From: Botryllus schlosseri
Taxonomy: Eukaryota
Reading direction: 5' to 3'
NCBI GenBank assembly: GCA_051294905.1
Contig: CM119375.1
Coordinates: 4,030,001 to 4,094,000 of the forward strand
DNA: 64,000 bases
Position 1 is the first letter of the stretch. Each line of letters begins with the position of its first letter. Under the pieces are notes generated by a model. It made no database searches, was not told the DNA's origin, and saw nothing but the letters and a program-made list of their open reading frames with translations. Made by a program: the position numbers and the translations under genes. This document shows, piece by piece, positions 2,493 through 52,284 of the stretch.

Positions 2493-2540
2493 CTGACACA
2501 ATAGGCCTACTCAGTGAAAGTGACAGATGGGTATACTTAC

Positions 2541-26185: not shown

Positions 26186-27480
26186 TTGCGGCCGCGGTAA
26201 CCTCGGACCGTAATTAGTCATTAGCATTTCCTCTAGATTGCAGTCTTGCTCATCCTTATTTCGATTGAGCCAGGGCATGCTGCCGTAAAACAATAACTAT
26301 GCGGGCGTGTACAAAACATTAAATTAGCGTGTGTGGGCGGCCGTCAACATGCAATTTGAATTTACGAATCGGATCCCAAATCGTTGAGAGATTTTATTTC
26401 AGCCTAAACCAGTGGTTCCCAACGTGGGCGATATCACCCCCCAGGGGGCGATTTGGCGGCCTAGGGGGGCGAAAATAGACAAAGGGGGCGATAGGGGGGC
26501 GATGACGCGTTAAAACGGCTATTTTGGAGTCAATTCGGAGAAATGACCTTTTTTTTTTTTTGGTCAACCCACGGAAATTTGGTTGCAAAAGTGTAAAATT
26601 CGACAACGATCCGCAAAGTTGACCTTTTTTTTTTTTAGTCAACCCGCCGATGACTGCAAATTGTATACCGATTTTTCGGTTCACAAAATCTAGGGGGCGA
26701 TGATCGGCCTTGAGATTGAAAAGGGGGCGATGAGTCGAAAAAGGTTGGGAACCACTGGCCTAAACAATTATCTTCACACGTAGCGCGATTCATGATGACT
26801 TGGATATTTTGTTTCTAATAGAATAGTGTCCTTGCAATCTGAGCCCCGCCGTACAAATGCGAACCGCAGATAAAAAATGATGCGCCCCATAAAGAAATAC
26901 CAAGTTGGAATCGTGTGCCTCTCACGTACGAAAGTTTTTGTGGTACGTTTGGGTGTTTCCAATATATTTTAACTATACCCACAATCTTGATGGGAGGTCA
27001 ACAAATAACAACATGTAAAAAAGCGTTTAATAAAAACCTGAAAATACATCATCATCAATTTTGTGACCTAATATTTTTAGGACACCCATCCTTCAGCTCT
27101 ACCATGGACCACGTGGGCTGAGAAGGGATAAATATTGTGTGAAATATATATGTGAACAGTGAAACTACTATATATTATCGACAAAATTCAGTCAAGCTGT
27201 TGAAAAATTTTCGCGCACGACATGACCAGAAACCGTATCCCAATATCTTTTCCTAACATTTTTACTCGCGATTTGGGGGCATGTATAGTAAGCCTTCGGA
27301 GACATTCGGCCTCTACAATTACAAACTTTTATAAGAACGGTACTCTGAAGAAATCAGGAGTAGCACAGAACGCCACCAGGGCTATCCGCAGTGCAAAGTT
27401 CCCAATTGTCAATTTAACGTGAATATTTGTCGTCCAGATGGGTCATGACCACTCTCCGCTGGGATGCGGCTCTATATGCT
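26186..27480. mobile_element. Degenerate copy of the 37717..38490 hAT family, interrupted by MITE 26410..26757
   Basis: Colinear similarity (gcggccgtc.acatgcaa...cacgtgggctgagaa.ggataaatatt...atgcggc). Confidence 0.55.
26410..26757. mobile_element. hAT-Charlie MITE with GGGGGCGA repeats
   Basis: TIR CAGTGGTTCCCAAC; perfect TSD GCCTAAAC; near-identical copy at 47496..47873. Confidence 0.92.
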
Positions 27481-28248: not shown

Positions 28249-29185
28249 TCGATCACTGCTCATGGGCTCATTCTTGGCCTAGTGGAAGCAGTAATCCAGG
28301 TTTGATGAGAGCGGAATAACAACATTACTTTTAGGGATGTGATGCAAATTTTTGCCGGGATCCTAATGCGATTTAAGGAGCTTTAATATACTGGATGCGG
28401 ATGCCATCCCTTGCGAGTAGATGCAAAGTGACCCCGGACAGATCAGAATATTTACAATGAGTTGTTACGAAATCCCGAGATACGATATTTCGTTAGCCTG
28501 ATCGTTATGAGTGAGTGAGTCAGTGGGTGTCTTGCGAATTGCGCTAATGCACTGTTATTAATAACTACCAGCACGGCAACATCTTATAATCGAAGAAAGA
28601 CAAAAGCCCTTTCCAATGCAACTCCTCATCCAGATTTTGGATCCAGTCTATGTACTGTCATCGTCTTAATGTTGCGATTGCCAATTTTACATAATTGCTT
28701 TGTAAACGTGGGCTACGCAATACTTCAGGGACTCAGCAGTTATATATAAATCCGCCACATTATGACGATGCCTTCTGTGACGCAGTCCAGAACCTAAATC
28801 TAAAGTTATTAGCAATGCGACATCACCAAATCCTTCACAGGTTCGCACCACCCTACAATGCCCTCTCATATGCAGACTTCTACGAACTCTGGATTTTCTA
28901 AATGAGCAACCAGAACTAGAACCAATACTCCTTAAATACCATTAGTAGCCAGTAACTATGGTTATTTGTATAATGTACATGTACGAGATTGGTTGTTTGT
29001 ACAGTACATGAACGTACAAGTTTGTCCATATGACCTATACCAGTTTCACGCTGCAGGCTGCAGTCAAAACGGAAGCTCGTATAGATAAAAAATGGAAATT
29101 GTACTGTCAAGTCATTATTCCATGACAAACAAAAACCAAACATCGATAGCATCTATGCCACTGCGAGTATATTAACTTCGTTATA

Positions 29186-29191
29186 TTTATT
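29186..29191 (-). terminator. Candidate polyadenylation signal AATAAA of gene 1
   Basis: tttatt on the + strand, about 73 nt past the predicted stop. Confidence 0.5.
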
Positions 29192-29263
29192 CCATAAATA
29201 TCATCAAGCGTGTATTGAACAAAGGATGTCGAAGGACGTACGAAGTGAAGTCAATCGTTCTTC

Positions 29264-29277
29264 TTAGTTGCCGGAGC
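29264..29277 (-). CDS. Gene 1 terminal coding exon (GSGN-stop)
   Basis: 63-nt intron ending gtgtatttag, then GC TCC GGC AAC TAA; AATAAA about 73 nt downstream. Confidence 0.65.
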
Positions 29278-32200
29278 CTAAATACACGAATCTCGTTAGG
29301 GTGCGAAATTACTTTTCACTGGTTGTTATCTTTTGCGTACCAGGGCATGTTTCCGCGAAATCGGAGCAGCAATTCTTAAACCATCTGCAAGTGATATTGC
29401 ATTGACACGGGTATCGTCTGTAGTCTGACCGTCTTCCACACCGACCCGCGCAGAATGAAGTCGTGGAATGCCCTGTTAAATTCAAAAAATCGTGATCAGT
29501 GAATGAAATAAGTAGTATGTAGCCTCGCCGAGCGTGTCATTTAAATTCTACAATAAATGACACCTTATCGAATCATAATTTGATATTGTGTGGCCATTGT
29601 TGAACAGCATTAAGGAGTTCAGTTACAGAAAGATAAGGGTTTGAAGGCCGTGAAATTAGTGAGAGTAACCCCTTATCATTGAGTTTTAGTAGACCATAGT
29701 CTCCCATGTGCAATATTATATATAATTTTGTTTTCCAAGGTCATCGGCGTTCGACGTTCTCTTATTCGCCCACACGTTTATCTATGTTATGAGGTAGAAT
29801 TTTAGCATGCGAGGCGGATAGAAAATGAGGAATATCTACGCTAGATTCATACTTTAAAACCTCCCGGACCTGCTGGATCTTGTCGCGTAAATTCTTTATA
29901 TAGATAAAGGCACGCGATGATCGTACGCCTAGGGTCTACATATAGATATAATCGATGCGGTTTCAAATAAGATCCAGCTTCTTGGACTGTGAAGTATTTT
30001 CTCACATTTGATCATTTTTCCGAATCAATTGCAAACTTATTGCTGGTGTTGAAGATGCAGTATTGAGTCTATTAAATCATGTATCTGCCATATTAAAATA
30101 TTATTCGCTTAATACGCAGAATTCCCAATGAACGGAACAGAACTGTTGTTGAATATACCCGGTGCAGTGACCAGTCTATCAACCAAACTAACCTTTTGGC
30201 CTATTATCGGCATTACCTCAGCTAATGTGCTTTGCATGACGTACCTGATGAGATGAATTCATCGGGAAATTGTGAGTGCAACCTAATCTATGAGATGTAA
30301 CAGTACTGTTATATTTCGTTCACCTTTTCTACTGACGTCAAAAATTTGAAGTCTACCGAGAAAATGTAAATGAAAAAGAGACACCGGCTCCGTGTCATCG
30401 AGTATGTCCGCATTCAAGTCGAAATACAAGCAATTGATACTGAATGAATACTAGTCACACCCCAAGTCTACCTGACCCCGATCTGACATTGTATCAACCT
30501 CGCCCATCGAAACATGAGTTTAGGGTTGCATTTAAAACAAACATCAATTTAAAACAAACATGTTTTATTGATTTTCCCTTTGTTTGATTATTAGTCATGA
30601 CGTCATAAGTCTTTAAATAGTGTCTTCGCAGTGGAGTGACATTGACAATTGAAAATAGAGGGTAAAGGTGATTACTTTGGCGGAAAAGGCAATACCGACT
30701 CCCGGATTAAACGGACCGAAAATATCTTTAAACCATTCCCTATACGTCGACTATATTGGGTGCAATTAGTCCGTAGGCTCATGCGACATGTTTTTTCGAC
30801 AAAGTGTTTTAAAACACTATTTGTTTCAAATGCAACCCTACATACCTTATTCATTTATATCACTATTCGTTTTATGGTATCCCTTATTTCTTTCCATCCA
30901 GGGTGCATGCCGCTTATTTACATCGCCTAGGCCCAGGTTGATGTCTGATTTCAAAGACTACTCCATACCGTTGCGACACCTTCCTATATTTTCATTGTAT
31001 CGCAGTCGTGTGGTGTTTTGAAATGATGAAAATTACTAATAAACCGATACTACTGATAGCCTACTCAGTGTAAGTGTAAAATTTACCTCTGCAATTAGGA
31101 ACAGGGAACTTCCACGTCCCATCCGACATGCATACATTAGATCCGTCCCCATGCGTCAATATGTGCCCAATGTGACAGAAGTACCGCACGGACGCCCCGG
31201 GTTCGTACCAGGGTTCTTTAGGCCTTGCCCCGCCGTTTCGGACTTCTTTTTCGGAACATCTTTGTTTGTTTGCTGCATCCAAGCGTAACTCACGCATTAG
31301 CCCGCGAAAATATTGCATAAAAATGTGTCGCATATGCATGTATGTATAAGGGGTTTTATGGTGCTCGACTACTAAGGTCTTGTGCACCAGGCCTGGGGGA
31401 GCTAATAGTTAAATCAGATACGTCTACACAATACAACAAATTCTATGACCAGATTAACCATACGCGGATCAGTCAACAGACAGTCCAAGTTAAAGCTCAC
31501 ACTGCTCCGTGCAGCTACATTTTTTAAATATTGTCTCTGGTGATAGTATCGAGGACACGTCATATGTGTCATATGTGCAGACTTGGACCACTATTCCAGT
31601 TGTATAATTAGACTAATTAGAGCGAAATGACTGTAGTCTAATTATAATCTAATTTTTGAAAATGTCCTATGCTCTAATTTTAATACTCTGCTAGTGGCGG
31701 ACGGTCACATCTGACAGCGTCAACCGAATCCGGGTTCATTTCAAAATGAATATTATATTCAATTTTCACTTACAAATGCAAAATTCCTCCATGTCCCATT
31801 CACCACCGCTGAGGCAGGTGACTTTTCCTGCTGTCTTGGGACGGAATCCATCGTCACAAGATATCTCTGCAGTGTCGCCTTCCACGAAAACGTCTTTTAG
31901 ACTCTTGTCGTCCAGTAATTTCCCGTTTTGCACGGTAGGTCTGTAGCACACTGGTACTGAAAAGCAAATGACCACTGATCAGTACGCGGCTGTGCTGTGA
32001 ATTCTGTTCTCCTACCAGACTTGGCAACTAGAGAACCCTCAAATTAGATTTCCAAATTGAATTTCCAAATTAGATTGGAATTGGAATTATTGCTACACAG
32101 CTTTTTTACAAATTACATTAGAATTGCTGAATTCGCGTGACATTGAATAAAGATCAGTTGATATCAAATCGGAGATCATCCTCATAAGCATGATAATGCC

Positions 32201-35200
32201 AAATGTCTGTACAGCAAGCTTGGCTCGTTTCGCATTATGCAATCCTCCTGCAGAATTTACAGGGATACCAGAAATTAGATTAAAACTAAAATATGCGTAG
32301 AAAGATTTCACAAACTAGATTCCAATTCGATCAACTGCATTCCCCTGTAATTAATCTATTTAAACAGCTATAGAATTATCTATAGTTGTCCGAGTCCGTC
32401 TTCTATGCGCGTTGCGAAATTAAGGCGAATTATATGTGCTGTGTAGTAACATCTACGATAGCTTAGCTAACAAGAAATCTACGCATCAGATGTCAAGTAG
32501 GATTACACAGTCGGATTAAATTGACACGGATTTAAGCTTTACGGCGCTTACAACTTTGACATGTCACGATTACGCACTTGAAAATATAGATGGTGCAAAC
32601 CCCTGAATGGCACGGGAAGGTGTGCGCTATTTATTATCGAGATTCAGTTTAATTATAGATAACTAACCTATGGATAGATACGCAACACCCGTCGTCACGC
32701 TTGCTTGCCCAGAGGCAATTACTGCTCAGCAATCTGAACGCAACATAATTGCTAATCCCGTTGCTGACGACCCGAGCGCTCAAATTAAACAGAGTTGATC
32801 TTATTTGAAAGCTACTGTCGCACTGATTCCGAAAATATACATTAAAATCTGATCAAGGCAATGGAACTCCCTTAAAATACACGTCAAAGTCTGAAAATCG
32901 GCATTGTTCTGAACAATTGCAACTACGCAAGGGCCATTGTTGTAGTCATTGTGCTGCGTCGCTGCGATTGTTTACAACAATGCCGATTCTCAGACTTTAA
33001 AGGCTATTTCGGGGTAGTTGAATTGCCTTAATGAAAATTTAATGTATATTTTCAGAATCAGTGAGACAGTAGCTTTCGAATAAGACCAACTTTACTCAAT
33101 TTGAGCGCTCTGGTCGTCAGCAATGGAATTAGCAATTATGTTGCGTTCAGATTGCTGAGCAGTAATTGCCTCTGGGCAAGCAAGCGCGACGACGAATGTT
33201 GCGCATCTATCCGTAGGTTAGTTATCTATAGTTTAATTTATGGCGCTCTACAATGTTTATAGTAGTTTGCCGTTGTTCTGTTGTGCCAAGAATTCAATTT
33301 CAAAGAATCTGGATGAAAGAAGTTGGAAATTTTTATAATTCGAAATATTTATACCATGGTGTGTGTGTACTGTACAACCTGCCAAGAGTAGTTTTCCAAC
33401 GCAAACATCTGAATTACTAAGGGTAGCACAGCGATAACTAACTGAACGGAACATTCGCACCATCGCTACTTGAAAAAGACCTATCTACACCTCCATGGGA
33501 GCCGGTAGTTTCATACATTTCCTATATGCTACTCGATTGGTATGCTTTTAGTGTACAGTCCGTAGTGCCGAGCCATTTTGAAAGACGGAACCGAAGTGGA
33601 TCGACTAACCTGTGGTATTACTGTAATATATAATGGTAGGACAAAACAGGCCATATGTTAACACAGTGCAACGTCAAGTAACCACCTATCGTAACTTATA
33701 TAACTTCCGACTACAGAAATCCTAAGGCCAGACTGCAATTATGATAATAATCGAGCCGCGATACTATGGGCTTACGCGAAATTAATATTTTGAGAAAAGC
33801 ATATCAACAATCAAAATACGTCCTGGATATGTGGCGACGTCAAAAGACATTGCACCGTAGGCTGCATATACAGTGCACAGCAGAGCTTCCCAAACTAGGA
33901 TGCGCGTACCCCTACGTCCCCTAATCGAGAGAAAATACGGTTGGACGGGAGACACTTCATTATTCTGTCACTGTGACAATTTTCTATAACAACGACTATA
34001 TCGCTTATGTGATAAGCAAATATAAAGTTGAAGCTTACTAAATGCAGCGGCTATGGCTGCTTTTACTTTGCTGTGTGACGTAATAAATGAGCCTTTACAT
34101 CGCTGTGTACCGTCTCAAACTATAGACAACTAACCTACGTAGGTTAGTTATCTATACTCAAACACATTAACAGCATATTCCCGTTTATCTACAGACGTGG
34201 TAAGGTGAGGTTTACGTAGACTACTATAGCCTACCAGTGTCATTTGATTATTGTGAAGTCTATTTACTTGATAAACGCTATTTCGATCGTCAGTGTTTTG
34301 CTTCTGTACCGTAAGCAGGCCGGCGGTCACTGCGAAGCGAATTTTCTGGCAAACCGATTTAGGCCTATGCAGAACGCCAGACCAGGGTCACTTTCCCTAG
34401 GCTATACTAAGATAACACGTCTATTATAAGCAAGATTACGGGGATTATACCATTTTAAACACTGCTTCTCTGTTTTCATTTACCCACCGCATTTCGGTAT
34501 TTTCTTTTCCCATACTCCGTCCTCGCCGCATTTGACGTAATCATCTCCAACCAGAAGAGTGGACCGTTTGCATTTAAAATGGATTTCCGCTTTGTATTCG
34601 AATCGTCTCTGTATTGCAGAGTGTACGATGTTTTCATCGTCGACTTCGTCTCTTTCGAACACGCAATATTTTCTGCATTTCGGAGTCCATCTGTATTTCC
34701 ACTCTCCGCCCTCCTCGCATACGTTCTCCGCGGGACCGTCCAAGTAATATTTGTCCTCACATGATAACTTAATTTTTTGACCCACCCTGTAGGAGCGTTG
34801 TCTGGGCGACACATCTCCCTTTTCTGGCGCCGTGCGAAATCGGCATCTATCTGTAAGGAGGTATGTTTCAGAAAATGCGGATCGACCATGTTTGTATGCG
34901 CAAGAGACGCCGTTCACACGTTGATTTGTGTGCCTTGGGATCGACTTTGATCGAGATGTTCGACCTAAAAGATCATCGCTCTATCAAATATTCCGGTATC
35001 TCGCCGACTATCCGCCAGCCGCCGACCATGTCCACATTCAAGTCGAAATACAAACAATTTTCTACTGAATCAATGCTAGTCTGCCCTCAAGTTCGAACCA
35101 CGACCGGACATATAGATCTCGATTTCCGGCACATGTCACCTCCTTTTGTCGCATGTCCTTTTATATTATCGTCTTTTACTTTTCATTCAGTGTGCATGCC

Positions 35201-38200: not shown

Positions 38201-41200
38201 CTATAAATTACGGAATTCATTCGTGAATCTGACATTTTCGCGCTCCGCGCGACAATATGCAATCCCAGCAACTATTATTACCGTTAACACTCGCGATTTC
38301 GGTGCGTACAATAGGCCGTTGTGAAGAGTAGAATGGTCCGGAGTTCACCGGGAATGAATATGGACTGGACAAAATAACATAGGTATTTTGCTTCCAGTTA
38401 TTTCATTACGGCTATGCCCTGGAATGCGGCCTTAGGCTACATAAGTAATCGAAATACGGTTGTGATTGGCAAAAAGGTTGCCTACCTCTGTATCAGATGA
38501 GGGGAACGCCATTTTTTGACCATCGCCAAGGGGGGCGCATGTCCAAAAAGGTTGAGAACCACTGACTTAGACTCAACAATAAATGGTGCGATGTATCTGC
38601 AGTCAATCATTAGCATATATCATGTTATAATATCATAGTACGAGAATTGGTGGGGGTGAAAGGTCCCACAATTAATATCTTGCAATCTAACCAGTAAATG
38701 GAAATCAGTTGAATGAATTGAACTACCTTACAGGCTTTAATCCTCATTCATGGGCTATTACGTATATCATACATATTGTATCAGGTGGAAAAATATATAG
38801 TAACAATGTCAATATGGTGCGCTACCTTGCTCGACACACGTTGGCGTCTCGTCGTTGTCGTATTTCCAGAATCCAGCTTTCGTGCAGACGTTATGATCTC
38901 GTCCGATTAATTTGTAACCCTCGTCGCAGAAGTACCGCACTCGCTGTCCCGGTAATTTGTAGCCGATCACCGGCAACACATATCCACCGGCTGGCGGTTT
39001 CGGAATGTAACATACCACTGAATTCAGAAAACATCGAGCAATCAATGGCTATATTTCAGTTGGTAGACAGCCTATTGATATCTGTTCAAAAGGTGATACA
39101 CGAATGCGCGAACCTATACCCCGGAGTGATGCAGTAGTATAAATCAAACACGACGTTTTAATCCAATCGATGCTTGCAAATTAGATTAAGCACAAATGGA
39201 GTACGAAGGAACAGGATTTACAACAATGATTTCCATTATGAATCGATCAGAATCGTCTCTTTCGCAAAGTTACCCAAAAGAACAAAGCGGTTGAATATAT
39301 GAAGACAAAGAAAAACGCCGATTGATAATGATGAAAGGCTCAAGCGTGCAATAATTATAGTAAGTATAAGTATATACTTACTATGTTATATAAATATTAG
39401 TGGGGTGAACGGGTTTCTAAATTCTGAGGTATATAGGTTGTGTTTTCGTGTACGACCTTTAGGGCGTGAATACACCCCTTCCGCTAAATCCGGGACACCC
39501 AGACTTGGAGAACTATCAATTTTTTAGCTTTTCCAAATTAGATTAGAACTAAACTAATAGCTACGCTGTTTTTTGAACAGTATATTCATACTGAAATGAA
39601 CCTGAATATTTTCGGCTGACACTCGTTAGGGCTGATCGTAAGCAACTATAGTAGAGAATGGAAAGGAACATGGTATATCAACAATAGTATCACAAAATAT
39701 GACGTCACCATCGTTTTTTTTTATTAGACTAGAATTAGAACTACACATTTTATGCAAATTCGATTAGAACTAGAATTATAGATACTCAGTTTTCTCAGAT
39801 TAGAATATAATTAGAGTTGCAGCTACTCAGCATTTCTCCAGATTACATTAGAATTACTGGATCGACGAAAACTTGGACATAGAATGAAGTTCAGTTCGTA
39901 TCGAACCAGAGCTTATTCTCACAAGCATGAGATTAGGAAATGTCCGTACAGCATGCTTGACTCGTTTCTCACTGTTCCGTTCTCGTGTAGCATTTTCATG
40001 AAAAGCAGATTTTAGATTAAAATTAAAGTGACAGCAAAGGAAGATACCAAATTCAGATTAGAATTAGATTATCGTCATTTCGATCTAATTAGTTTCATTT
40101 GACAACTAGAATTATCTAGTTGTCAAAGTCTGGTAATTCCCAGTTCTGCGTAATGTAACAAGCAAACCAAGATGTAAATTACTACACAATGCAATAACAT
40201 GTGGCAATTATTCTATTTCCATGTAACATATTATCATTTATATATTACATATGCATATTGCATGTACATATATACCATTTTTACTATGTAACATTTTAGC
40301 ATATAATATGTATAGTTTCACCATGACTATTTAAAATATCAAATTGTCGGTGAGGAGAAAGTTCGCGTCACCTGCCGACGTTCAAGTGACAGTCTGATTA
40401 CAGATGCGCGCAGCACGAGTTTCGCGCTTGAAACTGCTTATTATCTATGATCGAGATGAGTACAAACCAGCGCGTTGGCTTGATAATGATCATTATGTTT
40501 ACAGGAAATTCATCCATCTCTAGATTATATACAATGAGATATGTACCTTTTTTACAGCGTGGAAGTTTACTCCAATTTCCATTGCTCCTGCACACGACTT
40601 GGTTGTCGTCTGAAGTCGAGTATCCGTCTTCACACTCGACCTCAACTTTGTCTCCCACAAAGTATTTCCGTCGCTTCGGTCTCCAATCCGAGTATTCCGA
40701 CAAATCCGCTCCCAAGCAAGTGGCTGAAAAATTAGGCGGGGAATCTATTGCTCGTTACATGGTCATGGGTAAAAGCAAAGAGCGCATTGAAAGTACTGCT
40801 GTTGCGTATTTAATGAATTGCAGCTGCGCTACACGGCAGTAATTAGTTATTAGTTAATTAGTTAGTTGTATTACACAGTACGGTATTTCGATACCAAACT
40901 TTTCATGAATTACTATGTACTATTTAATCCACAATTGTATACAATAGTGTTTTTGAGGTAGGCGAGGTAGGTGGTCGCCTATAGGCCCCCTTGGTTGATT
41001 TACGCGCGTTCGAGGCGCCTCCCTCCCCGGCTTACGCGCCTTTTTAAAACTATTCCTCCGGTTTACGCGTTTTTTCTAACTATTACCATTTTCTGAATAA
41101 CCGTGGAAGTCCGCGTGTTTTTATTGATATGGGGGCCCCTGCATGTTTCGCCTCCCCCCTACAACCTGAGGGCCACCACTGATTCTATAATATATTCATA

Positions 41201-44200
41201 TTGAAATAAGCCTGAATATTTACGACTGACACTCCTCACGGATAATCATCATCAGCCGAAAATATTCGGGTTTATTCCGATATGAATATATTATTCAATT
41301 GTATATTGCAGTTCCGTACCTCCATGAAGCTCTTCATATACAATTTACTATATTACTGTGTAACACACACATATACGGATAAACTAATACAGTAATTCTT
41401 CAAGGGCTGAAAGACAATAATATATATATCACCTGATAGAAGAACTCCACGAAACAGCAGGAAATTAAAAGCAAAGGCCTTTAGATAGGCAGAAACATTG
41501 TGTACTACAAGTAAAGGTTGTCAGTAACGCAACACTCGTACTTTTCGAATTACCTGAAATAGATTTTGCTTACTCGTACTACTTACTCAACTGGTTATGT
41601 TTTGAGCAGAGGTGGTCAAAGTAGTCACCGTCGCTACTCAAGTAGAAGTAGAAGTAACGCCGGAATTTCTACTCAAGTAGAAGTAGGAGTGGTGGTTCAC
41701 AAGTAAGTAAGTTAGTAGGTATTCCACGCCCATTTTTGCCTACAAAACTGAAAACTGCCAAGTAGAAGTAGAAGTAGTCTAAAATCACAACTACTTAAAA
41801 AGTAGTGTGAGTAGGCAAAATCTACTTCAAGTACTTCAAAAAGTAGAAGTACTTCGTTACTGACCACCTCTGGTTTTGAGACTACTTCTACTTGACAGTT
41901 TTCTGTTTTTAGGCAAAACTAGGTCTGGACCACTTACTTTTCAGTTACTTTTAAATCGCTTCTTCGATTTCTAATTGAGTAGAAATGTTTAATTCTACTC
42001 TACTTCAGTACCAGCGGGGACTGCTTTGACGGACGCAGTTGTACCAAAGTAAAAGCGAATATAAGTAGGGTTACCATACGTCCTCTTTTAAGAGGATTTG
42101 TCCTTTTTTTCAATAAATTGAAAGTGTCCTCGGAGGACGCAGCGTACGACAGAGCTTCGTAATAAATCGGGCAAAACGGAGGACGAGTCGAAGTGACGAC
42201 CATTTTTTTGTTTTCAGTCAACACCTCGGACGTAACGCAAAAATGCGGGTAACTCGGGAGTCAGGTTAACACCGGCACTATTTGTCGAAAACTTCTAAAA
42301 TTAAACATTTTCTTTTCCGGTATTACAGCTTCCGAAGTTTTTAAAAGGTGTCCTCTTTTGCGGATGCTGAAATATGGTAACCCTCAAGGCTGGCACTGCA
42401 TTATGTGTGTTCGTTGTTGATGTTAATGGATGCATCGACTTTTTTTGACCGTAACCACTCATCTTGTGTTGAAACGAACGAAGTACTGATTATTGTGCAA
42501 TAACCTGTGTCCGAAGTAAGCAGAGAATTTTCCGAAGTAACTGGAGTTTGTTTACGTGCACTTTTTACTTCTGTTCCGTTCCCGAGCACAATAATCATCA
42601 ATAATCATTAGAGTATATTTCCGTCTGCCCAAGACTCACAGAGTGTTCAATGCGTTATACAAGACACAATGTGATGTAATGAACATATAGGGGGATGCCG
42701 AAACGACCAGCTGCGGTCTCTTAATCAGGCTTGCGACTCGGCCTATTGCCCAATGTCACAGTCATCTTCGATGTTGTTCTTTCTTCGTCGCTCCTTTTAG
42801 AAGACCCTATTTATTCCGCCTTTCTTTTTTTCCTCGAGTCTTATACTGGGCGTTTTTGTCGGCGTAAGAACATCGACACGGCGGACGAGGAGCCCAAAAT
42901 AACCTCCGCATTTCGGCCGATTATAGCGGAGTCGACTGTACTTGTATTTTGCAAACGAAACACTTACTCACTTCGAATGCACGCTAGCCTCTCGTCATAT
43001 CTCCACTTTCCGTTTTCGAGACACTCATCGAAAAAGGTGCCGTTAAGGTAAGAGTCGGAACCGCAGAAAAATGTGATTTCGTCGCCGGCAAAGTATTTTG
43101 ACTTCTCAGGCTCGATGCCGCCGTTCACTGGCGTTCGCGGAGTTGGGCAGGAGACTTCATCTGTGAATTGTAATTATTACATTGAGTTGTAATGACTCGA
43201 GTCGCAATGTTTCGATGACTTGACTCCAGGCATTTTTTGAAAGATGTCAAAATAACTCGACTCGAGTCAATTAGTGTATCGAATCGACAAGAACTATAGT
43301 CATTGCGCATGACTCAACTAAGTCACATGACTCGACACATTGTATGACTATTCAGAACTCGTATATCAGGATCGATAATAATTGAAAATAGGCCCAAACT
43401 GTCTTGTATCAGTTTGAATAAACATGCCTACAATGAGCAAACGAGTATATTATGAATCTGAGGCCTTCGATATCACCCAAGAGTTTCACAAAGTGAGCTG
43501 AAGGTGACTTGAACTTGTTACTGAACAGTAAACACAATAACTTGAACTCGGACTCTGCTCGATGCACCCTGACTTGAGGTGGACTCGACTCGGCGATGAA
43601 TTGAAAATGACTCGGCTTGACTCGAGTCAAAACTATTAAAGTAAAATAGACTTGTTACTTGGAACCACGTGACTTGGTTACAACCCTGGTTCAGCGTACA
43701 TGAAGATGCATGGTCGCACCGTTGGATTCACGTTCGTGTTAGACATGCGAACCGTGATAATTTGGAACGAATGTCAGTATGTTCGATGTACAGTGATAAA
43801 TTTTGCCAAACATCAGAATGACACAATAATTTAACAATTTTTGATCAAATCTCCTAGATATTGAGGCTCCTGCCTGCCGTGTCATGCTGGCTACAATCCA
43901 TCAAGTTTAACAGAAAACTATGAAACGATTCGTTTACTATGACTGGGAAATTTTGTTAAAGTTTCGATCGTGCCAACTTCTGAATAGATTTATATCATCA
44001 TGCTTCATAATCCCCGAACGCGTGTCATACGTGCTGGTAAGATTGTTAAGACGTGGTCTTAGTCGTAAATCAAGAAGTTGTGTCACCTATCGACCATGGT
44101 AACTTAGTCATCGTGAATCCGTGAGCCACTATTCTGAAATCTAAATATACCTTCAATGCATTTTGGAGTGGACTCGTATATCCATTTTCCATCTCGTCCG

Positions 44201-47200
44201 CATTTGTTCTTTCTGCTGCCCGTTATTCTGTAGCCCTTCTGGCAGGAGAATTTAATTTCTTCGCCAGGAAAGTACGCAGAATATTCGGAGTCGGCAAAAC
44301 CTTTCGGTGGTGCTCGGAGTCTCTTGCAAGTTACTACAAAGAATTGATTGGATATAGGATGTATGACTTTAAAAATAAGGTTTTACAAAACATTTAAAGA
44401 GCTTCTTCTGTAATATTTATAGGAGAACCAGCGATTATATTAGAATTTGAAGAGCTTACTGGAGGTACAGAACTTCAATATACAAGTAATTAGTATATCC
44501 ATATTGAAATAAACCCAATTCACGAAGTACCGATCAAGAAACCGGATGCTCCCCCATTATACGCAATCTTTTCGATAGTGGACTATATATGGACACCAGA
44601 CAGTCAACGCGAGTACAATATTAATAATCTCTTGATAAACTTAACAGTGTTGGGATGACTCGAGTCACTTTGGAAAAATGACTTGACCTGACTTGACTCG
44701 GGGCTTCAGAAATGTGCATTGACTCGTGACTCGAAGTAAAATTTACGAGTCAATTTCAAGTCATCAAGTAAACGGCGTCGATTAAATCACTGTATCTTGT
44801 GTATGTTCGATTGTTCGGTGTCACTTGTGAGAGCAACCAGTCATGCACTGATTGTACGTTACACTGATCCTCCTTTGTTACATGGGTTACCATACGTCCT
44901 CTCTTAAGAGGATTTCTCATCTTTTTTGACTTTTTTGAAAGTGTCCTCGGGAGACGCAAAATGTCCTCTTTTTGAGCATTTTGTTGAATATAGGGTCAAA
45001 TTTGACTGAGATACATTAAATCAGCACTGTACTAACGCTCCGGCGGCTATTTCGAATTCGACAAAAGTGTGTATTTCTGGAGCCGAGTCGGTAAGATGAG
45101 AGTCGGGAGAAATTTACCACTTTTTCCGGATTTGACTCCAGAATTGCAAGTCTTGAAATTTTGAAGAAGTGTCCTCTTTTCACATTTCCAAAATATGGTA
45201 ACCCTATTTGTTACATCACAAATAAATTGACTGCAAGCGAAACTATCACAGATTGCGTTTCCGTAGTAGTAGAAGTAGTAGTAGGTTAATCTAATAGCAA
45301 CGTGTCTCTGTTTCTTAGACGGTTCAATTCCGCAGTGCTCACCTTCACCAACCCTTTTGCAGGATTAAAATCGAACAACTGTAGTTTGTGCGTTTATATT
45401 CTCACGGATGTGTAAATGGGTGGTGCTGGCCGTTGTACCATATCAATTTGTTTCAACTTCTCGCGGCTTCGTGTACGGCTCTATATTTTGTCTGATAATA
45501 ACTGATTGTAGCATGTAGCTGTACTAGGGCTGTTCAAAAATAACCTTTTTTCCTGAATCTTGCTGGCTACTTGATTAAATCGTTTGGTTGCCTTAAAAAA
45601 CGACGCACACCAAGTTTGAATTAATTCCAACCAATATTCGCGGGTTTCGTACACTTTGAAAATTTTGAATTTGACTTTGATTTTGAATTCTTGGATTATC
45701 CACCGATCAAGGATAATCCTAGAATTATCAAAGAAAAACTGAAATAACTCCGCTTCTACGACTTGGAATTGAGTTAAATTTGTTTTGCATAGTTTTTGAA
45801 GACAGTCCAACAATTTCATGTTGTTGGCAGAAAAATTTTTTTTGCATTTTTGGGCAAATTCAGAATTTTCAAACTGTACGAAACCCGCGAATATTGGTTG
45901 GAATGAATTCAAATTTGGTGTGCGTTGTTTTTTAAGGCATCCTAACGATTTAATCAAGTAGCCAGCAAGATTCAGGAAAAAAAGTTATTTTTGAACAGCC
46001 CTACTGTACAGTTACTCGCGTGTTTTATTAGCAGTTCTACGTTTGCGTAAGCGATACAACGTCTTTTTGCATGCATATTTAACTTTATATTCGTGATTTG
46101 CTTCAAGATAAACGGCCAATTAATTTTTTTTTCACACAGCTAGCAAAATGTAATAACATTGAATCATCTCTCATCGTTCGAAAATTCAATTTGACTTGAA
46201 TTGTGACTTGACTCGTGACTTGACTTGACTTGACTTGACTTGACTTGACTCGACTTGACTCGACTTGACTCGACTTGACTCGACTTGACTCGACTTGACT
46301 CGAGTCACCTCGAAAAAAACGGGTGACTTGACTTGACTCGAGTCACTTTCGAAGATCGTTTGACTTGACTTGACTCGAGTCAAAATATGCAATGACTCAA
46401 GATGACTCGTGACTCGCAAGTAGTGACTTGATCCCAACACTGATATTAAAATCACTTGTTTTCCTTGTAGCTGTGGTCTATGCCATGCATCTCACTGATG
46501 CATATTACTAGAAGGGGTAGGTATTCGTCTATATACCCGTAGTATTTGCTACTGGCTATACCTGCCATCTAGACAGATATCTTGTCTTAGTTCATTGTTT
46601 CAAACCTGCACGGCAAAATGGCTTCTTCTCTTCCTTCCACTCTCCGCTGTTCTGGCAAATGTCGGTCTTTGCTCCGATCAGTTTGAACCCCGTTTCGCAC
46701 GAATAAGTGATCTCATCTCCAGCAAAGTACGGGCCTTTTGACGGTGACACGCTGCCATCTCGTATACCACCGCGACCGGTGCACGTTACTGTGAGTCGGA
46801 GAAGGCAATATACTTTAGAATCGAAGTTCGACGACTAGAGAATTTTCAGCTTTTTCAAATCAGATTCGAATTAGAGCTGTAGCTACACGTGTTTTTATAT
46901 TAGATTTGAATTGGAATTACTGAATTCACGAAAACGTGTAAATGCAACAAACATCAAGTTTCATTTTCACTGTGTGTGCGCAGCGTACGATAGTGTATAT
47001 TAGGCTACGCGTAAGTTCGTCGAAGCGAGAAGACTTACATTTTAGGCATTTACGATGTAGGCTACTCAACCCTAATGTTGTTTGTGGTAATCATGGTGTT
47101 TGACGACTACAATGTTCATATACACCAGGCCGATATTTATTATTTTTGATTCCGCAACCACCGGCTTATAGCACGGCACACTTCTAGGCTTTTGTAAGAC

Positions 47201-50200
47201 ACCGCTTATGCGAATAAGATGGCGAGCAGGAGCCTAGATAAACCTCCAACTCTTTGGTAGGAATTCTGAAGTCGACATCGGTCGGACTCGAACCCATAAC
47301 CCATTGGTGTTGTAGCTGTGGAATATACCACTATACGCTATCTCGCCACCTACTTAACCCTAATAAATTGATATCTTGGTAAATTTGGAGTGCCAGAGTT
47401 TTCGAACGCCTCGAAATCTTAATTAAGGAATGCATCATAGTGTACTTTGGTGTGGATACAAGCAAATCTCACGGATCGATTACATTGGTCTACGTCAGTG
47501 GTTCCCAACGTGGGCGATATCGCCCCCCAGGGGGCGATTTGGCGGTCCAGGGGGGCGAAAATGACGAAGGGGGCGATAGGGGGGCGAAAATGGACAAAGG
47601 GGGCGACAGGGGGCGAAATTAGCTAAGGGGGCGATAGGGGGGCGATGACGCGCCAAAACGGCTGACCTTTTTTTTTATTTTTTTTTTTTTTATTTTTAGT
47701 CAACGTTTTGAGCTCTGAGAGGAAAAAAATGACCTTTTTTATTTATTTTTTTAGTCAACCCGCCGGTGATTACAGTTTGTATGCCCATTTTTCGGTACAC
47801 AAAATCTGGGGGGCGATGATCGGTGTTAAGCTTGAAAAGGGGGCGATGGTTCGAAAAAGGTTGGGAACCACTGGTCTACGTCATACTTTTCATTTGGTCA
47901 AAGACAATTTGACGGTAATTTTTGACCGGCTTGCCGAGCAGCAAATTTGATAAAATGAGTATCAATCGAAAGCTACCGTACTGATTTCGAAAATATAAAT
48001 ATTATTCTGCTCGTGGTCCTGTACCCCTCAAAATCAGCTTCGAATGTGGCATTGTAACGTAGTTTGGTATTTTGACGCATTCATATGCCATCTGAGCAGC
48101 TCAGGAGCAATTTCGCCGCGAGTGAGAGTGTGAATGCTCAATCGGTTGCGCAACAATGGCCAATACGCTTGCAGTTCACGCTGCTTCTCACCGGCTCGCA
48201 GACGGCATGGTTGCGTCAAAATACCAAACTCCGTTACAACGCAACAGTCGAGGCTGGTTTCGGGGGATTCCAGGACCACGAGAAGAATAAAATTTATATT
48301 TTCGCAAGCAGTACCACGGTATGGCTTTCGATTGATACCAATTTAATCAAATTTAACGCTCTGCAAGCCGGTCAAAAATTACCGTCAAATTGCTTTCGAG
48401 CAAATGAAGTTGTGACGTATAGACCAATTTCAGAGAGCCGTGAGATTTGCTTGTGTCCACTCCGTATAAGACACTATGATTGCAACGTGTGTTGATTGAT
48501 CAGAGAGAAGCAGGCATAGCGACGCCACTACAACAATGTCCTTCGCAAATCCACATTGGCAAGTAGTGGATTTGAAGTGGCATTGCTGTTGTTGAAATAG
48601 GGGAGATGTGGTACCGATGGATCAAAAATTGCAAAATGATCCCTGGCCCTCAAATCTTCAGCCGAGAATGGCAGATCTTTTGCTCTCTCAACACTTCGAT
48701 ACAAGCTCTACCTATCGCGGACATTTACATGAATATCCACCTTTTCAAAAAATATTTATAAACGTTTAAAATTTGTTGCTCGAACGTGTCATCGGTCCCC
48801 ACCCGGTGGGTCCAACGGCACACGACCATGGGACCTATGAGACATACGCTAAAAAACTCAAATTTGTTAACTTGTTTTGTTGTGTACTATAAGCTAAGCT
48901 ACAGCAAGTCAATGAAGAATGTTTCGTCGCGACCTTCAAGAATAAAATAGATTATATCAACTGAAATATTGGCATAAAATCATGTTTTGATATACGCCTA
49001 AACTTAGAAAATTAATGCGACATACATATTACCCGCAACACGACATTTTGAATTTCAAGTAACTCGTAATAGCGATAAAACACCACAGGTACCTATGATT
49101 TACAGCCTATATATATGTAGGCGAGTTTCTGTTGTTAAGTGATTAGTTGGCCCATCTATTTTGCTTGATTTGGCTATGGTACCATAGGTCCCTCACCCCC
49201 TAAATATTGTAATTGACTTGAAAATAGTCCACTCGAGGATGGTATTGATTAAAAAAACATGTGCCATTATATACCCTGATATAAGCCCTATACTTCACAT
49301 CAAAAATTATGGCGGGTTTGTTAGTCTGGAAGGTGATATAGAAAAATGTAAATGTCGATCCAAATTTACTTTATACCCCCTAAAACGTAAATCATTCGTC
49401 ACAGACCCCATAACTCACGCAGGTCGAATTTTTTTGCATGTGAGGAAAGATTCTGTCAGCATGTAACTGTAGACAAATTCACGGAGTGTAATCATGGAAT
49501 TATCATGGAGAATTTTTCAAGTATTTTCGGTCCCAGTGATCCATCGGTACCACATCTCCCCATTAATTAAATACGATTTATTCATTGTACATGTGGATAA
49601 ATGGGCGAATAATGTATCGATTCTGCAATCCGGCCCACAAAGTACTTAATTTTAATATATCCGACCCGCCGACTGGAGAAGTTGCTCGCCCCTGCAATAG
49701 ATTATAGTTATATTTAGATCCCTTGGATTTCACAAATATGACTAGAATTAAAATATTTAGAGCAGTGGATCTCAACCTGGGGGCGTGAAACATCTGACGG
49801 GGGCGCGAAGAAACGGTCAATTTTTTTTTACCTTCAATTCACGTGTGTTTCTCTATATATAGATCGAATTTCATATTTATTAATTCTCTCATCAACAGTC
49901 ACAAAACCTTCCCTGCCATCAAACAATCTGTTGGGGTTGCTAGCATCCCCATTTGATTTTGTGATATGACGATAAGGGAGGGGCGCGAAATTTTTCACTA
50001 TCATAAAGGGGGGGCGTGTCTAAAAAAAGGTTGAGAACCACTGATTTAGAGCGAAGAAAGAAACACTTCACACATTAGATTCTAATTGAAGTTATAGAGC
50101 ATAGAAACTCTTCACGAATTTGATTGGATTTCGATTACCGTCATTTTATTATAATTATTCTATTTAGACAAGTGCAATTATCTAATTGTCTAATTACAAT

Positions 50201-52284
50201 GCTGCCGATTCATCAGCATCTAACATTTCGTTAATTCATATTTACCTTGTAAGAAGCAAATCGGTGTGGGTGGATTCCATCCATCTGCCGTGCACTGCGA
50301 CGCCTCACTACCGAATAGCTCATAGCCCTCCGAACAGTAAAACTTCACTTTGCTACCAATAGGAAATCCACGCTTGTATTCTTTGCTTGAAAGTGTCGTT
50401 TTAAAGTTTTCTTCCGGAATAGGGCAATCTGAAGAGCGAGTGATGTTTTGAGTAGGCTATATCAATTTAACTCTCCGTTCCTGCAAGCTATCGACATCAA
50501 TTTTGAGTAGAGTATCGAAAGTGTCAAGATAGCAACATCTAACTTTAGGTCAAATTGTAGCAATGCTTACGCACACCGTTTACTTCAAAATAAAGCGTTG
50601 GGTCGGTATGTAATTTTGACGTAACTAATCCACAGAAACAATGTAAGTTTTTATAATACGTTATTTTGAGTGTCATTATATCGTAGGCCTACCATATCTT
50701 CAGCCCCCCAAAAAGAGGACATTTTTGACGGCAAGTATCACGAAAGTAGAATTGTTACTTTCGAAGTTAATGATATTTTACGTTTCCTTGGTAGTTGCTG
50801 GAAAAAGTTACAAAAAATCAGAAACAAAAACTTTTTTTTCAGATTCAGCCAATAATACTTTGCGGATCTTCTACCTTTTTTTCAAAATGGAATGATCATT
50901 TTTAACGAGTTTGTGAAATTGTTTACACGAAATATCATTGAAATTATATACAACCGTCCAGATGCTCGAAACTAATCGAACTAATATAAAACCAATTAGC
51001 CTGCCAAAAAAAAATTGCGACTGATCCTCGCATGTAAAAGGCCCAGATGTTACAGATAACGTCAATCCTTTTCCTTTCATGGTTGCAGTAATATTTAGGA
51101 AATAAATACCCGAAATGCGACAAAGGGGATATTCAGGCATTTTGGTGAGTTTGGAATAACATTCATTTTTCATGAGAAACGAGATAAATCCTCCTGAAGA
51201 GGACATATGTGGTAGGCCTATTTTAGCCATATAGTACGTATATGTGCGTTTATGGTAGGGTATATGTCACATCGGATTATTTCAGGACTATAGAAAATAC
51301 CCAAGCTAAATTTAGGGTCCCGTTGTTGTCGCGTTATCTTGTCGAAGTAGATCTCAACGAAACTCCATGCACTGGCATAATCGTTCGATATTTAGGGCCC
51401 TAGTGCCTGCATAGGCCAATTAGGAATCACGCTACTGAAAAAATCAATCATAACTTATATCCAATTTTACTCTACTAGGATTGAATTGTTAAGTTCAACC
51501 CAATGTGTTTCCGATATACACAGATAACTTGGCAAGCAGAAAAAGCTTAACTTAGCAAGCAATTAAATCCTTAACCAACCCTGTAGGCCTTTATGTTTCA
51601 ATATTAAACGTCATGCGGTACACATATCATTAAATCAAGGGGGCAACACACGGCCCGCGACTGGATTTTGACCTGCCCACTTACAGTTTCCGGTATTAAA
51701 TGATAATATGGCCCACGGCCACAATCTGCCACAATCCCCCAATGCGTGCTTAGTACGTCAAATTATAGTGACTGTAGGTTATTATTTAGTTCTTTCTTCG
51801 GTCATGAACATTAACAAGACAAAGTTGCGTTCCAATCTAACTGGTGTTTACGTTTAGTCTTTACTAAGGGTTTCTACGTCCGACACGCAACCAAAGTTCA
51901 GCGAACTTGTTGACAATTTTGATCCACCACAGATGTCTGATTGACTTCAACAGCTATTGAAGTACATTACGTTAATAAATCCATTTAATACTGTTTTGGT
52001 CTCTATGCTCTTCGACATAATTTACGGAACCGGCCTGCCAAGTAGGCTACTTCATTTCCCATATCAGAGCCGTCGACTGGAGAAGTTGCCCGCCCCTGAT
52101 TAAAGTATGGGGAAATGCTTGGGTCGGACAGTTGATGACAACAGCAATATATCATTCCAGGAATACAATATATTAGAGTGTGTAATAGACCGACAGTCAA
52201 CCACTCAAATTCGTACTTACAGTAAGTGGCATCAGCGGCTGACACAGCCAATAATACAATCGCTATCGAAACGACTCTTTCCAT
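29264..52284 (-). CDS. Gene 1: secreted multi-CCP (Sushi/SCR) protein with C-terminal somatomedin-B domain; signal peptide + 10 CCP + SMB + short tail, 682 aa
   Basis: complement(join(29264..29277,29341..29472,31087..31272,31774..31956,34488..34850,38826..39017,40547..40723,42972..43160,44151..44333,46606..46788,50246..50428,52221..52284)) = 2049 nt, one open frame. All introns are GT-AG and phase 1. Each CCP has the C..F/YxC..G[YF]..C..W..C pattern. Confidence 0.9.
29341..29472 (-). CDS. Gene 1 somatomedin-B (SMB) domain exon
   Basis: tttaacag|GHSTTSFCAGRCGRRSDYRRYPCQCNITCRWFKNCCSDFAETCP|gtacgc; 8 Cys matching C-x-C-x3-C-x5-CC-x-D-F-x3-C; 132 nt, phase 1-1. Confidence 0.92.
30380..31040 (+). 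mobile_element. CR1/L2-like LINE 3' end, interrupted by MITE 30521..30840
   Basis: Matches 34960..35350 on both sides of the MITE. Confidence 0.65.
30521..30840. mobile_element. hAT-type MITE (same family as 125..530)
   Basis: TIR TAGGGTTGCATTT..AAATGCAACCCTA; degenerate TSD catgagtt/catacctt. Confidence 0.75.
31087..31272 (-). CDS. Gene 1 CCP10 exon
   Basis: ggatgcag|NKQRCSEKEVRNGGARPKEPWYEPGASVRYFCHIGHILTHGDGSNVCMSDGTWKFPVPNCR|gtaaat; 186 nt. The acceptor has a weak pyrimidine tract, so the 5' edge is less certain. Confidence 0.88.
31774..31956 (-). CDS. Gene 1 CCP9 exon
   Basis: gcttttcag|VPVCYRPTVQNGKLLDDKSLKDVFVEGDTAEISCDDGFRPKTAGKVTCLSGGEWDMEEFCI|gtaagt; 183 nt. Confidence 0.92.
32016..32398. 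mobile_element. CAGACTTG-family MITE
   Basis: TSD tctcctac/tcttctat. Confidence 0.72.
32655..33230. mobile_element. Foldback (almost fully palindromic) P/Galileo-like non-autonomous element
   Basis: About 275-bp inverted arms starting TATAGATAACTAACCTA, loop of about 25 bp; 7-bp TSD TTTTAAT/GTTTAAT. Confidence 0.75.
34121..34156. mobile_element. 36-bp head-to-head TIR remnant (probable excision footprint) of the 32655 family
   Basis: ctcaaac-TATAGACAACTAACCTAC|GTAGGTTAGTTATCTATA-ctcaaac; perfect 7-bp TSD. Confidence 0.8.
34488..34850 (-). CDS. Gene 1 double-CCP exon (CCP7+CCP8)
   Basis: ccttacag|DRCRFRTAPEKGDVSP...EWKYRWTPKCRKYCVFERDE...GVWEKKIPKC|gtgggt; 363 nt, 8 Cys, 2 conserved Trp. 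Confidence 0.92.
34960..35350 (+). mobile_element. CR1/L2-like LINE 3' end
   Basis: RSIKYSG...IRQPPTMSTFKSKYKQF resembles the C-terminus of CR1/L2 ORF2; (ATTGA)-type tail. Confidence 0.68.
36115..37044. mobile_element. Non-autonomous hAT element
   Basis: TIR CAGTGGTCGGGAACC; perfect TSD CATTATAC. Confidence 0.9.
37069..38564. mobile_element. hAT element hosting a nested hAT insertion
   Basis: TIR CAGTGGTTCTCAACC; TSD GCTTAGAC/ACTTAGAC. Confidence 0.82.
37717..38490. mobile_element. Nested hAT element
   Basis: TIR CAGAG(A/G)(G/T)(G/A)GGCAACC; TSD TATTAGAT/TATCAGAT. Confidence 0.8.
38826..39017 (-). CDS. Gene 1 CCP6 exon
   Basis: gaattcag|VVCYIPKPPAGGYVLPVIGYKLPGQRVRYFCDEGYKLIGRDHNVCTKAGFWKYDNDETPTCVEQ|gtagcg; 192 nt. 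Confidence 0.93.
39500..40132. mobile_element. CAGACTTG-family MITE carrying a ~130-bp insert of another repeat
   Basis: Termini match 10391 and 32016; the insert at about 39557..39685 matches 7785..7890. Confidence 0.7.
40547..40723 (-). CDS. Gene 1 CCP5 exon
   Basis: tttttcag|TCLGADLSEYSDWRPKRRKYFVGDKVEVECEDGYSTSDDNQVVCRSNGNWSKLPRCKK|gtacat; 177 nt. Confidence 0.92.
40942..41181. mobile_element. hAT MITE
   Basis: Right end GGGCCACCACTG; TSD ATTGTATA/ATTCTATA; left TIR degenerate. Confidence 0.6.
41190..41291. mobile_element. ~100-bp hairpin MITE (TATATTCATAT..ATATGAATATA)
   Basis: Inverted arms of about 40 bp; one arm shared with 7785..7890, 39557..39685 and about 6490..6550. Confidence 0.6.
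41607..41872. mobile_element. hAT MITE with AGTAGA repeats, nested in a related AGTA-rich element
   Basis: TIR CAGAGGTGGTCA; perfect TSD GTTTTGAG. Confidence 0.88.
42066..42385. mobile_element. Blackjack-like hAT MITE
   Basis: TIR TAGGGTTACCATA; TSD not recognisable. Confidence 0.75.
42915..42940 (-). mobile_element. Solo Tc1/pogo (Tigger-like) terminus
   Basis: TA|CAGTCGACTCCGCTATAATCG; partner end not found. Confidence 0.35.
42972..43160 (-). CDS. Gene 1 CCP4 exon
   Basis: attcacag|DEVSCPTPRTPVNGGIEPEKSKYFAGDEITFFCGSDSYLNGTFFDECLENGKWRYDERLACIR|gtgagt; 189 nt. Confidence 0.92.
43182..43688. mobile_element. GAGTC-rich hAT MITE, inverted relative to 9467
   Basis: One intact TIR (TTACAACCCTG) and one degenerate; ends about 20 nt from the CCP4 acceptor. 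Confidence 0.75.
44151..44333 (-). CDS. Gene 1 CCP3 exon
   Basis: ttctttgtag|VTCKRLRAPPKGFADSEYSAYFPGEEIKFSCQKGYRITGSRKNKCGRDGKWIYESTPKCIE|gtatat; 183 nt. Confidence 0.93.
44882..45206. mobile_element. Blackjack-like hAT MITE
   Basis: Perfect TSD TTTGTTAC. Confidence 0.88.
45525..46003. mobile_element. Unclassified long-TIR MITE (TAGGGCTGTTCAAAAATAAC...)
   Basis: Inverted arms of at least 130 bp; flanked by the direct repeat CTGTAC (or by TA, depending on the boundary chosen). Confidence 0.8.
46186..46380. repeat. (GACTT)n / (GACTCGACTT)n tandem array
   Basis: Direct reading; lies in the subterminal region of 44645..46442. Confidence 0.95.
46606..46788 (-). CDS. Gene 1 CCP2 exon
   Basis: ctcacag|VTCTGRGGIRDGSVSPSKGPYFAGDEITYSCETGFKLIGAKTDICQNSGEWKEEKKPFCRA|gtttga; 183 nt. 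Confidence 0.93.
47077..47355 (-). mobile_element. tRNA-derived SINE, full length
   Basis: A/B boxes (TAGCGTATAGTGG, GGTTCGAGTCC); TSD AACCCTAAT, present once at the empty site 4185..4193. Confidence 0.88.
47436..48478. mobile_element. P-superfamily-like non-autonomous element (CATAGTG..CACTATG)
   Basis: Long imperfect TIRs; imperfect 7-bp TSD AATGCAT/ATTGCAA; second partial copy at 55586..~56030. Confidence 0.62.
47496..47873. mobile_element. hAT-Charlie MITE (same family as 26410)
   Basis: Perfect TSD GTCTACGT. Confidence 0.92.
48600..49561. mobile_element. Unclassified TIR element (GGGGAGATGTGGTACCGATGGATCA)
   Basis: Perfect 25-bp inverted termini; TSD unclear. Confidence 0.78.
49763..50043. 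mobile_element. hAT-Charlie MITE
   Basis: TIR CAGTGG(A/T)TCTCAACC; perfect TSD ATTTAGAG. Confidence 0.9.
50246..50428 (-). CDS. Gene 1 CCP1 exon
   Basis: ctcttcag|...YCPIPEENFKTTLSSKEYKRGFPIGSKVKFYCSEGYELFGSEASQCTADGWNPPTPICFLQ|gtaaat; 183 nt; absent from the ORF track. Confidence 0.93.
50684..51220. mobile_element. Blackjack-like hAT MITE, diverged and inverted
   Basis: TAGGCCTACCA termini plus the AAGAGGAC subterminal motif. Confidence 0.6.
51636..52098. mobile_element. 3691-family hAT MITE, internally deleted
   Basis: Right end GACTGGAGAAGTTGCCCGCCCCTG; partial TSD attaaa. Confidence 0.62.
52221..52284 (-). CDS. Gene 1 exon 1: signal peptide MERVVSIAIVLLAVSAADATY
   Basis: ATG, hydrophobic core, small-residue cleavage region (ADA-T); ends T|GTAAGT, phase 1. 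Confidence 0.88.

Follow-up and report, generated by a model that had tools for sequence, protein, structure and literature searches.

A twelve-exon Botryllus schlosseri gene for a probable secreted protein of ten complement control protein modules and a C-terminal somatomedin-B module, behind a deposited partial protein

In this study, we analysed a stretch of 64,000 nucleotides from Botryllus schlosseri (assembly GCA_051294905.1, contig CM119375.1, positions 4,030,001 to 4,094,000; hereafter the window, to which positions refer unless another sequence is named) and characterised one gene on its minus strand. Running from 52284 to 29264, this is very probably the complete, single-copy, 12-exon gene of a deposited Botryllus 'complement control protein', encoding a secreted chain of ten complement control protein (CCP) modules followed by one somatomedin-B (SMB) module, with exons 1-7 predicted. 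The architecture is real but already known, as the C-terminal third of the protein, across the junction of CCPs and SMB, was made public in the 1990s with a name that refers to complement, and the gene does not represent a new type of system. What we add is the probable full length, the 12-exon plan, a hidden terminal intron of 63 nt and the apparent recurrence of CCP-to-SMB loci in the genome. A 30-year-old partial cDNA is thereby linked to a full gene with a signal peptide, ten CCPs and an SMB.

The link to the deposited protein came from the SMB exon, whose 43 amino acids were used as a phmmer query against 1.84 billion representative proteins. The second of the 81 matches (P0002, 251 aa) shares every residue of the SMB (its residues 205-247; 100% identity) and ends in GSGN; it is the NCBI nr/PRF entry 'complement control protein [Botryllus schlosseri]'. 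This protein aligns without gaps to residues 430-680 of our model, with 245 of 251 positions identical, and covers the end of CCP7, CCP8-10, the SMB and the terminal GSGN; it is a 3′ partial sequence that begins inside CCP7. Searching the whole genome with it returned only the window gene's own four exons and no paralogue at E <= 1e-6, and the gene is single-copy. Judged by this sequence identity, the window gene is the gene behind the deposited partial 'complement control protein' cDNA. [quoted passage not shown] The original prediction for this locus had mentioned CCP and SMB cDNAs reported from Botryllus in the 1990s and allowed that the architecture may be known, which agrees with both the C-terminal 251 aa in nr/PRF and the 1995 paper cited in the review. 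It had also raised the possibility that an identical, characterised protein exists: a near-identical sequence is indeed deposited, while no functional characterisation was found, and the literature search returned no text describing the domains of the 1995 protein.

The window and the deposited protein differ at six residues (458, 459, 494, 530, 550 and 551; VD/AC, V/I, K/T and KT/ER). All six lie in CCP8 and CCP9 (exons 8 and 9) and none in the SMB, and the RNA contigs are also variable there, which suggests allelic or population polymorphism.

The gene model was obtained by a pattern scan and a mechanical list of open reading frames (ORFs), followed by the selection of frame-compatible AG and GT sites. 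Ten CCP-like open frames were found from 50.4 kb to 31.1 kb, together with an ATG-led hydrophobic frame at 52284, and the resulting 12 exons span 23 kb of the minus strand (52284 to 29264), with canonical AG/GT at each junction and, by our splice-site reading, phase 1 for all introns. The single-module CCP exons measure 177-192 nt, and each module has its own phase-1 exon except for the fused CCP7-8. Each module piece was scanned separately against Pfam using the curated gathering cut-offs (Sushi PF00084, a module of about 60 residues with four cysteines and a conserved Trp, 20.7 bits; Somatomedin_B PF01033, 23.1 bits). Ten Sushi modules (27.7-65 bits) and one Somatomedin_B module (38.9 bits) pass, a result far beyond chance; these were the only matches, with neither MAM nor hemopexin found in any exon by the same scan.

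The predicted product of 680 aa (682 or 678 aa by alternative splice sites) consists of a signal peptide, the ten CCPs, one SMB with eight cysteines and a four-residue tail, GSGN, so that the C-terminus reads AETCPGSGN. It holds 48 cysteines, four in each CCP and eight in the SMB, and three N-x-S/T sequons, one of them inside the SMB. RGD is absent from the 680-aa model, in which the N-terminal signal peptide is the only hydrophobic stretch and no transmembrane segment is found. The mature chain was computed at about 661 aa and about 75 kDa, with a pI of about 8.3. Acidic and basic modules alternate along it (CCP3 net +7, CCP9 net -5; SMB pI 8.8), and the CCPs are joined by linkers of 3-6 residues. 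The secreted architecture put forward in the original prediction, namely a signal peptide, ten CCPs, a C-terminal SMB with eight cysteines and a stop, lacking a transmembrane segment and RGD, is therefore borne out by Pfam and the exon chain, and in its 3′ half by RNA contigs and the database protein. Its length of 682 aa is reproduced when the CCP4 acceptor at 43160 is used, 680 aa being our main model, and its boundary at 29264 is the exact end of the stop codon (TAA 29266-29264).

Transcripts support the 3′ half directly. Transcriptome-assembly-like runs from three studies and one raw RNA run were aligned to 29.0-35.0 kb of the window. The transcript-assembly runs contain a fraction of 0.07-0.14 of the words of this segment, near the exon fraction, and each of the three studies contributes one spliced contig that runs 34850..34488, 31956..31774, 31272..31087, 29472..29341 and 29277..~29154, covering exons 8-12. 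Its four joints (34488 to 31956, 31774 to 31272, 31087 to 29472 and 29341 to 29277) are all GT..AG on the minus strand. Exon 8 (34488..34850), with CCP7 and CCP8 fused in one exon, matches Sushi in two stretches (65 bits), its acceptor at 34850 being set from sequence and its second part matching the deposited protein. Exon 9 (31774..31956; CCP9, 33.3 bits) and exon 10 (31087..31272; CCP10, 27.7 bits) have both joints in the contigs of the three studies and match the deposited protein. Exon 11 (29341..29472), phase 1-1, encodes the SMB (38.9 bits) with an NIT sequon inside, and is joined on both sides in the three contigs; its cysteine pattern, C-x3-C-x10-C-x-C-x3-C-x5-CC-x6-C at 29345-29452, fits the eight-cysteine knot of the family (x9 or x10 in the second interval) and is the sole SMB pattern that the pattern scan found within the 64-kb window. 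The splicing of the SMB exon to CCP10, which the original prediction had left to cDNA, is thus seen in contigs from three studies.

Downstream of exon 11 lies the 63-nt GT..AG intron (29278..29340), which carries an in-frame TAA at 29312-29310. Read through, the ORF would end in GTQKITTSEK, and this end was ruled out: the intron is removed in all three contigs, and the deposited protein ends in CPGSGN. As the in-frame TAA is inside an always-spliced intron, the protein therefore ends in AETCPGSGN, with its stop at 29266-29264. The last exon, exon 12 (29154..29277), supplies the (G)SGN codons, this TAA, about 110 nt of 3′ untranslated region and an AATAAA at 29191-29186, as placed by sequence and contig ends. 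The contigs stop at 29154 and 29159, 27-32 nt past the AATAAA, and show no joint further downstream of exon 12 in any of the three studies. Because they end just past this signal with no joint beyond it, a transmembrane exon downstream of the SMB, which the original prediction had considered, is ruled out; the transcript terminates after exon 12.

With regard to function, we tentatively propose that the protein binds C3b-like fragments in the fluid phase of the haemolymph, much like factor H or C4BP. It would form a rod of ten CCPs that leads into a disulfide-knotted SMB with a GSGN tail and has no membrane anchor, and the C-terminal SMB would be a compact interaction or anchoring cap rather than a conserved PAI-1/uPAR site. 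In a search of solved structures, the best relatives of the CCP part were CR1, factor H, CR2, MCP and DAF. The layout is also that of complement activation regulators (RCA), with a contiguous CCP chain, short linkers of 3-6 residues, a signal peptide and no transmembrane segment. Factor H and C4BP alpha, among the best solved matches, are likewise secreted tandem CCP proteins with short linkers, and C4BP, too, has a C-terminal module other than a CCP. In contrast, no RCA protein is known to have an SMB, and no positional counterpart of their regulatory CCP1-4 unit was seen in the Botryllus protein. In regulators, three successive CCPs are described as carrying the ordered motifs M5-M3-M1-M2-M4, a signature that sets them apart from other CCP proteins (PMC6683126; Ojha et al. 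2019); the lists of that paper do not include Botryllus. Since C3, Bf, MASP and a C9-like gene are present in B. schlosseri (PMC5465252, PMC11593599), complement regulators are expected in this species, and the gene would provide a concrete candidate, amenable to expression, for the fluid-phase regulator still missing from the Botryllus C3 system.

Several findings weigh against reading the locus as one complete gene for a complement-binding protein. Exons 1-7, from the signal peptide to CCP6, are predicted from splice-site logic and from the share of words found in transcript contigs. Factor XIII B chain and beta2-glycoprotein I, which are not complement regulators, match the CCP part as well as the regulators do. 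When the exons of CCP1-4 were searched singly against the PDB, the matches were generic, to numerous modules of RCA proteins (in many cases factor H residues 134-189), factor XIII B chain, beta2-glycoprotein I and CR2, and no ordered module-by-module match to the regulatory CCP1-4 unit emerged. Moreover, no orthologue of the same architecture was found in the 1.84 billion representatives with the 43-aa SMB query, a weak negative as single-SMB orthologues could be missed, and look-alikes of the deposited protein in the ESM Atlas were generic Sushi clusters only, none with an SMB and all scoring <0.85.

A different role for the same secreted protein is a serious possibility, and about as likely as binding of C3b-like fragments: it may be a soluble recognition, adhesion or carrier protein, directed at microbes or polyanions, at tunic or matrix, or at another plasma protein, rather than a complement regulator. 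Models for such a role are the arthropod class C scavenger receptors, beta2-glycoprotein I and factor XIII B chain. CCP arrays have many non-regulatory roles, as the presence of the latter two among the best solved matches illustrates, and the alternation of basic and acidic modules (CCP3 at +7, SMB pI 8.8) is compatible with polyanion binding. Furthermore, CCP genes are numerous in the genome and CCP-to-SMB loci occur several times, and these cannot all be C3 regulators. The best-studied invertebrate proteins with CCP and SMB are pathogen-binding scavenger receptors (PMC5222524, PMC6191154); class C receptors (dSR-CI, MjSRC) are invertebrate immune proteins that, like the Botryllus protein, carry both modules in one extracellular chain. 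The plan of these receptors, however, is CCP-CCP-MAM-SMB-mucin-transmembrane, with two CCPs and a mucin stalk, whereas the Botryllus protein has no MAM, mucin or membrane segment and its transcript ends after the SMB. In addition, any ligand would be putative, and the name given by the depositors, together with the Botryllus C3 system, favors a role in complement.

The 5′ half of the gene model consists of predicted exons. Exon 1 (52221..52284) is predicted from sequence to start at ATG 52284-52282 and to encode the signal peptide MERVVSIAIVLLAVSAADA, followed after the predicted cleavage by TY, up to a phase-1 consensus donor GTAAGT; the A-D-A before the cleavage would fit the -3/-1 rule. It is followed by exon 2 (50246..50428; CCP1, 46.5 bits), bounded by AG/GT, phase 1-1, with predicted junctions, and by exon 3 (46606..46788; CCP2, 38.5 bits), likewise AG/GT and phase 1-1. 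The donor choice for exon 3 is uncertain, as an alternative at 46612 would remove 2 aa and give the 678-aa product. Exon 4 (44151..44333; CCP3, 37.9 bits), placed by its splice sites, encodes the most basic module (net +7). Exon 5 (42972..43154; CCP4, 31.4 bits), which contains an NGT sequon, has two in-phase AG acceptors 6 nt apart, and use of the alternative at 43160 adds 2 aa, leading to the 682-aa product. Exon 6 (40547..40723; CCP5, 46.6 bits), with an NWS sequon, and exon 7 (38826..39017; CCP6, 35.7 bits), both placed by their splice sites, complete this predicted part.

It is conceivable that this half is mispredicted, the transcript starting further downstream with fewer CCPs or taking in exons of another gene, an outcome that we regard as improbable. 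In its favor, exons 1-7 come from prediction, two splice choices are ambiguous (the donor at 46612 and the acceptor at 43160), and the contigs are short, the longest that covers the gene measuring 1005 nt and beginning 15 nt upstream of exon 8. These same 15 nt run beyond the start of exon 8, and therefore at least one further 5′ exon is joined. All seven predicted exons share one strand and follow in order, in phase 1-1, with near-equal length (177-192 nt) and AG/GT ends, and neither the ORF list nor the profile scan revealed another CCP exon between 52.3 and 64 kb of the window. Lastly, the share of words of 42.9-52.4 kb found in transcript contigs is 0.07-0.10, where the predicted exons would give about 0.09, an agreement that is weakly consistent with the predicted 5′ half.

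The SMB itself has its nearest sequences among multi-SMB and EndoU-type proteins. Only the deposited Botryllus protein carries Sushi among the 81 phmmer matches, the rest being multi-SMB, XendoU, nuclease and other proteins. The nearest solved SMB is that of human EndoU, followed by vitronectin (E 0.012), and the SMB of SUSD2 (PDB 2cqw) is a weak match (E 0.23). Vertebrate SUSD2 shares with the Botryllus protein the presence of SMB and Sushi in one protein, but differs in order and content: it is a type I membrane protein whose SMB is N-terminal and which further contains AMOP, vWD and a single Sushi (PMC5571916). A search for homologous proteins with the deposited sequence, limited by length window and word index, returned only itself among 73 candidates, and in these limited SMB and deposited-protein searches a secreted CCPn-SMB chain was not seen outside Botryllus.

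Vitronectin belongs to the same fold family of SMBs with eight cysteines. Its SMB is N-terminal and followed by RGD and hemopexin, whereas in the Botryllus protein the SMB stands at the C-terminus and both RGD and hemopexin are missing. In vitronectin, a pocket formed by Asp22, Phe13 and Tyr28 buries an arginine of uPAR and of PAI-1, with Asp22 making an ionic bond to that arginine in both (PMC8417595). Our HMMER alignment places Asn (in the N-I-T sequon), Ser and Phe, respectively, at these positions of the Botryllus SMB, while Tyr27-Tyr28 corresponds to Trp-Phe, so that an aromatic pair is preserved. Because the pocket positions are Asn, Ser and Phe, a vitronectin-type serpin or uPAR site is predicted not to be conserved. 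The original prediction had proposed that one molecule may combine a convertase regulator with a vitronectin-like SMB for serpin or protease interaction, and this combination finds no support in our analyses, given the generic RCA matches of the CCP exons, the changed Asp22 and Phe13 and the multi-SMB and EndoU-type proteins as nearest relatives. Vitronectin's inhibition of the terminal complex lies in its heparin-binding and hemopexin region, and its SMB is not known to take part. A dual function, in which the CCP body regulates convertases and the SMB, like that of vitronectin, binds a serpin or protease receptor or blocks the terminal complex, is unlikely: the SMB is a genuine one with eight cysteines, vitronectin is among its solved relatives, the aromatic pair is retained and a C9-like terminal component is reported in B. 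schlosseri (PMC11593599), but the pocket is altered, RGD is missing, the closest SMBs are of other types and the heparin-binding and hemopexin part of vitronectin is absent.

To place the gene in its genomic context, SMB exons were collected genome-wide, and a hidden Markov model (HMM) built from the gene's own CCPs was run on 10-kb stretches beside isolated SMB exons. At least 61 SMB exons are present, mostly in multi-SMB clusters on C15 and C2. The large clusters lie at C15 17.30-17.54 Mb and C2 16.89-16.92 Mb, with more than 30 of the at least 61 SMB matches on C15, and one open frame on C2 holds three consecutive SMBs; the clusters probably represent multi-SMB genes of the kind seen among the EndoU-type matches. 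In at least two to three other genome regions, predicted CCP exons and SMB exons adjoin each other with a common orientation, and by such adjacent predicted exons the CCP-to-SMB order is a recurrent combination in this genome.

One of these regions, on the minus strand at C4:23721687-23732299, has about ten CCP frames within 10 kb and, about 670 bp downstream, two SMB exons of the same orientation; at E <= 1e-6 it shows no sequence relation to the window gene. On the plus strand at C4:23795600-23851599, three units of several CCP frames each close with an SMB exon (23805452, 23830884 and 23851455), and these predicted exons could be three tandem genes or one large gene. On C5, four SMB exons lie 24-60 kb apart on the minus strand (C5:11094707-11213409). 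Those at 11.09 and 11.13 Mb are each preceded by a CCP exon, located about 100 nt upstream, and by another, divergent SMB-like frame 4-6 kb upstream, and the C5 loci look like a tandem family. That CCP arrays with a C-terminal SMB form a small, botryllid- or tunicate-specific humoral family (the window gene, the C4 loci and perhaps C5), in which the SMB takes the place of the domains that oligomerise or anchor vertebrate RCA proteins, strikes us as rather unlikely. If true, such a family would give tunicates a structurally distinct class of complement regulators.

A second multi-CCP gene occupies 2431-8600 of the window on the minus strand, 20 kb downstream of the SMB gene. It has four Sushi exons (31.9-45.3 bits) and a fifth CCP-like frame (8346-8558) that fails the Pfam cut-off, and it probably runs off the window start. 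Neither the pattern scan nor the genome-wide SMB search placed an SMB exon near it.

The raw RNA run gave zero depth on all exons in 29.0-35.0 kb and covered only intronic repeats. Within the introns, the segments 30400-31050, 31600-31800, 32000-33400 and 34000-34200 have very high, strand-symmetric depth in both RNA contigs and raw reads, with numerous loose ends and an identity of 90-95%. These segments are dispersed repeats or pieces of transposons transcribed from other places, rather than exons of the CCP-SMB gene. In intron 3, a (TTGAC)n microsatellite lies next to a 37-nt repeat (46191-46382), about 220-415 nt downstream of the CCP2 exon. Two pairs of dispersed repeats, 134-137 nt long and 88-90% identical (26626-26762 with 47742-47878, and 4394-4527 with 49561-49694), are shared by the introns of the gene and its neighboring regions.

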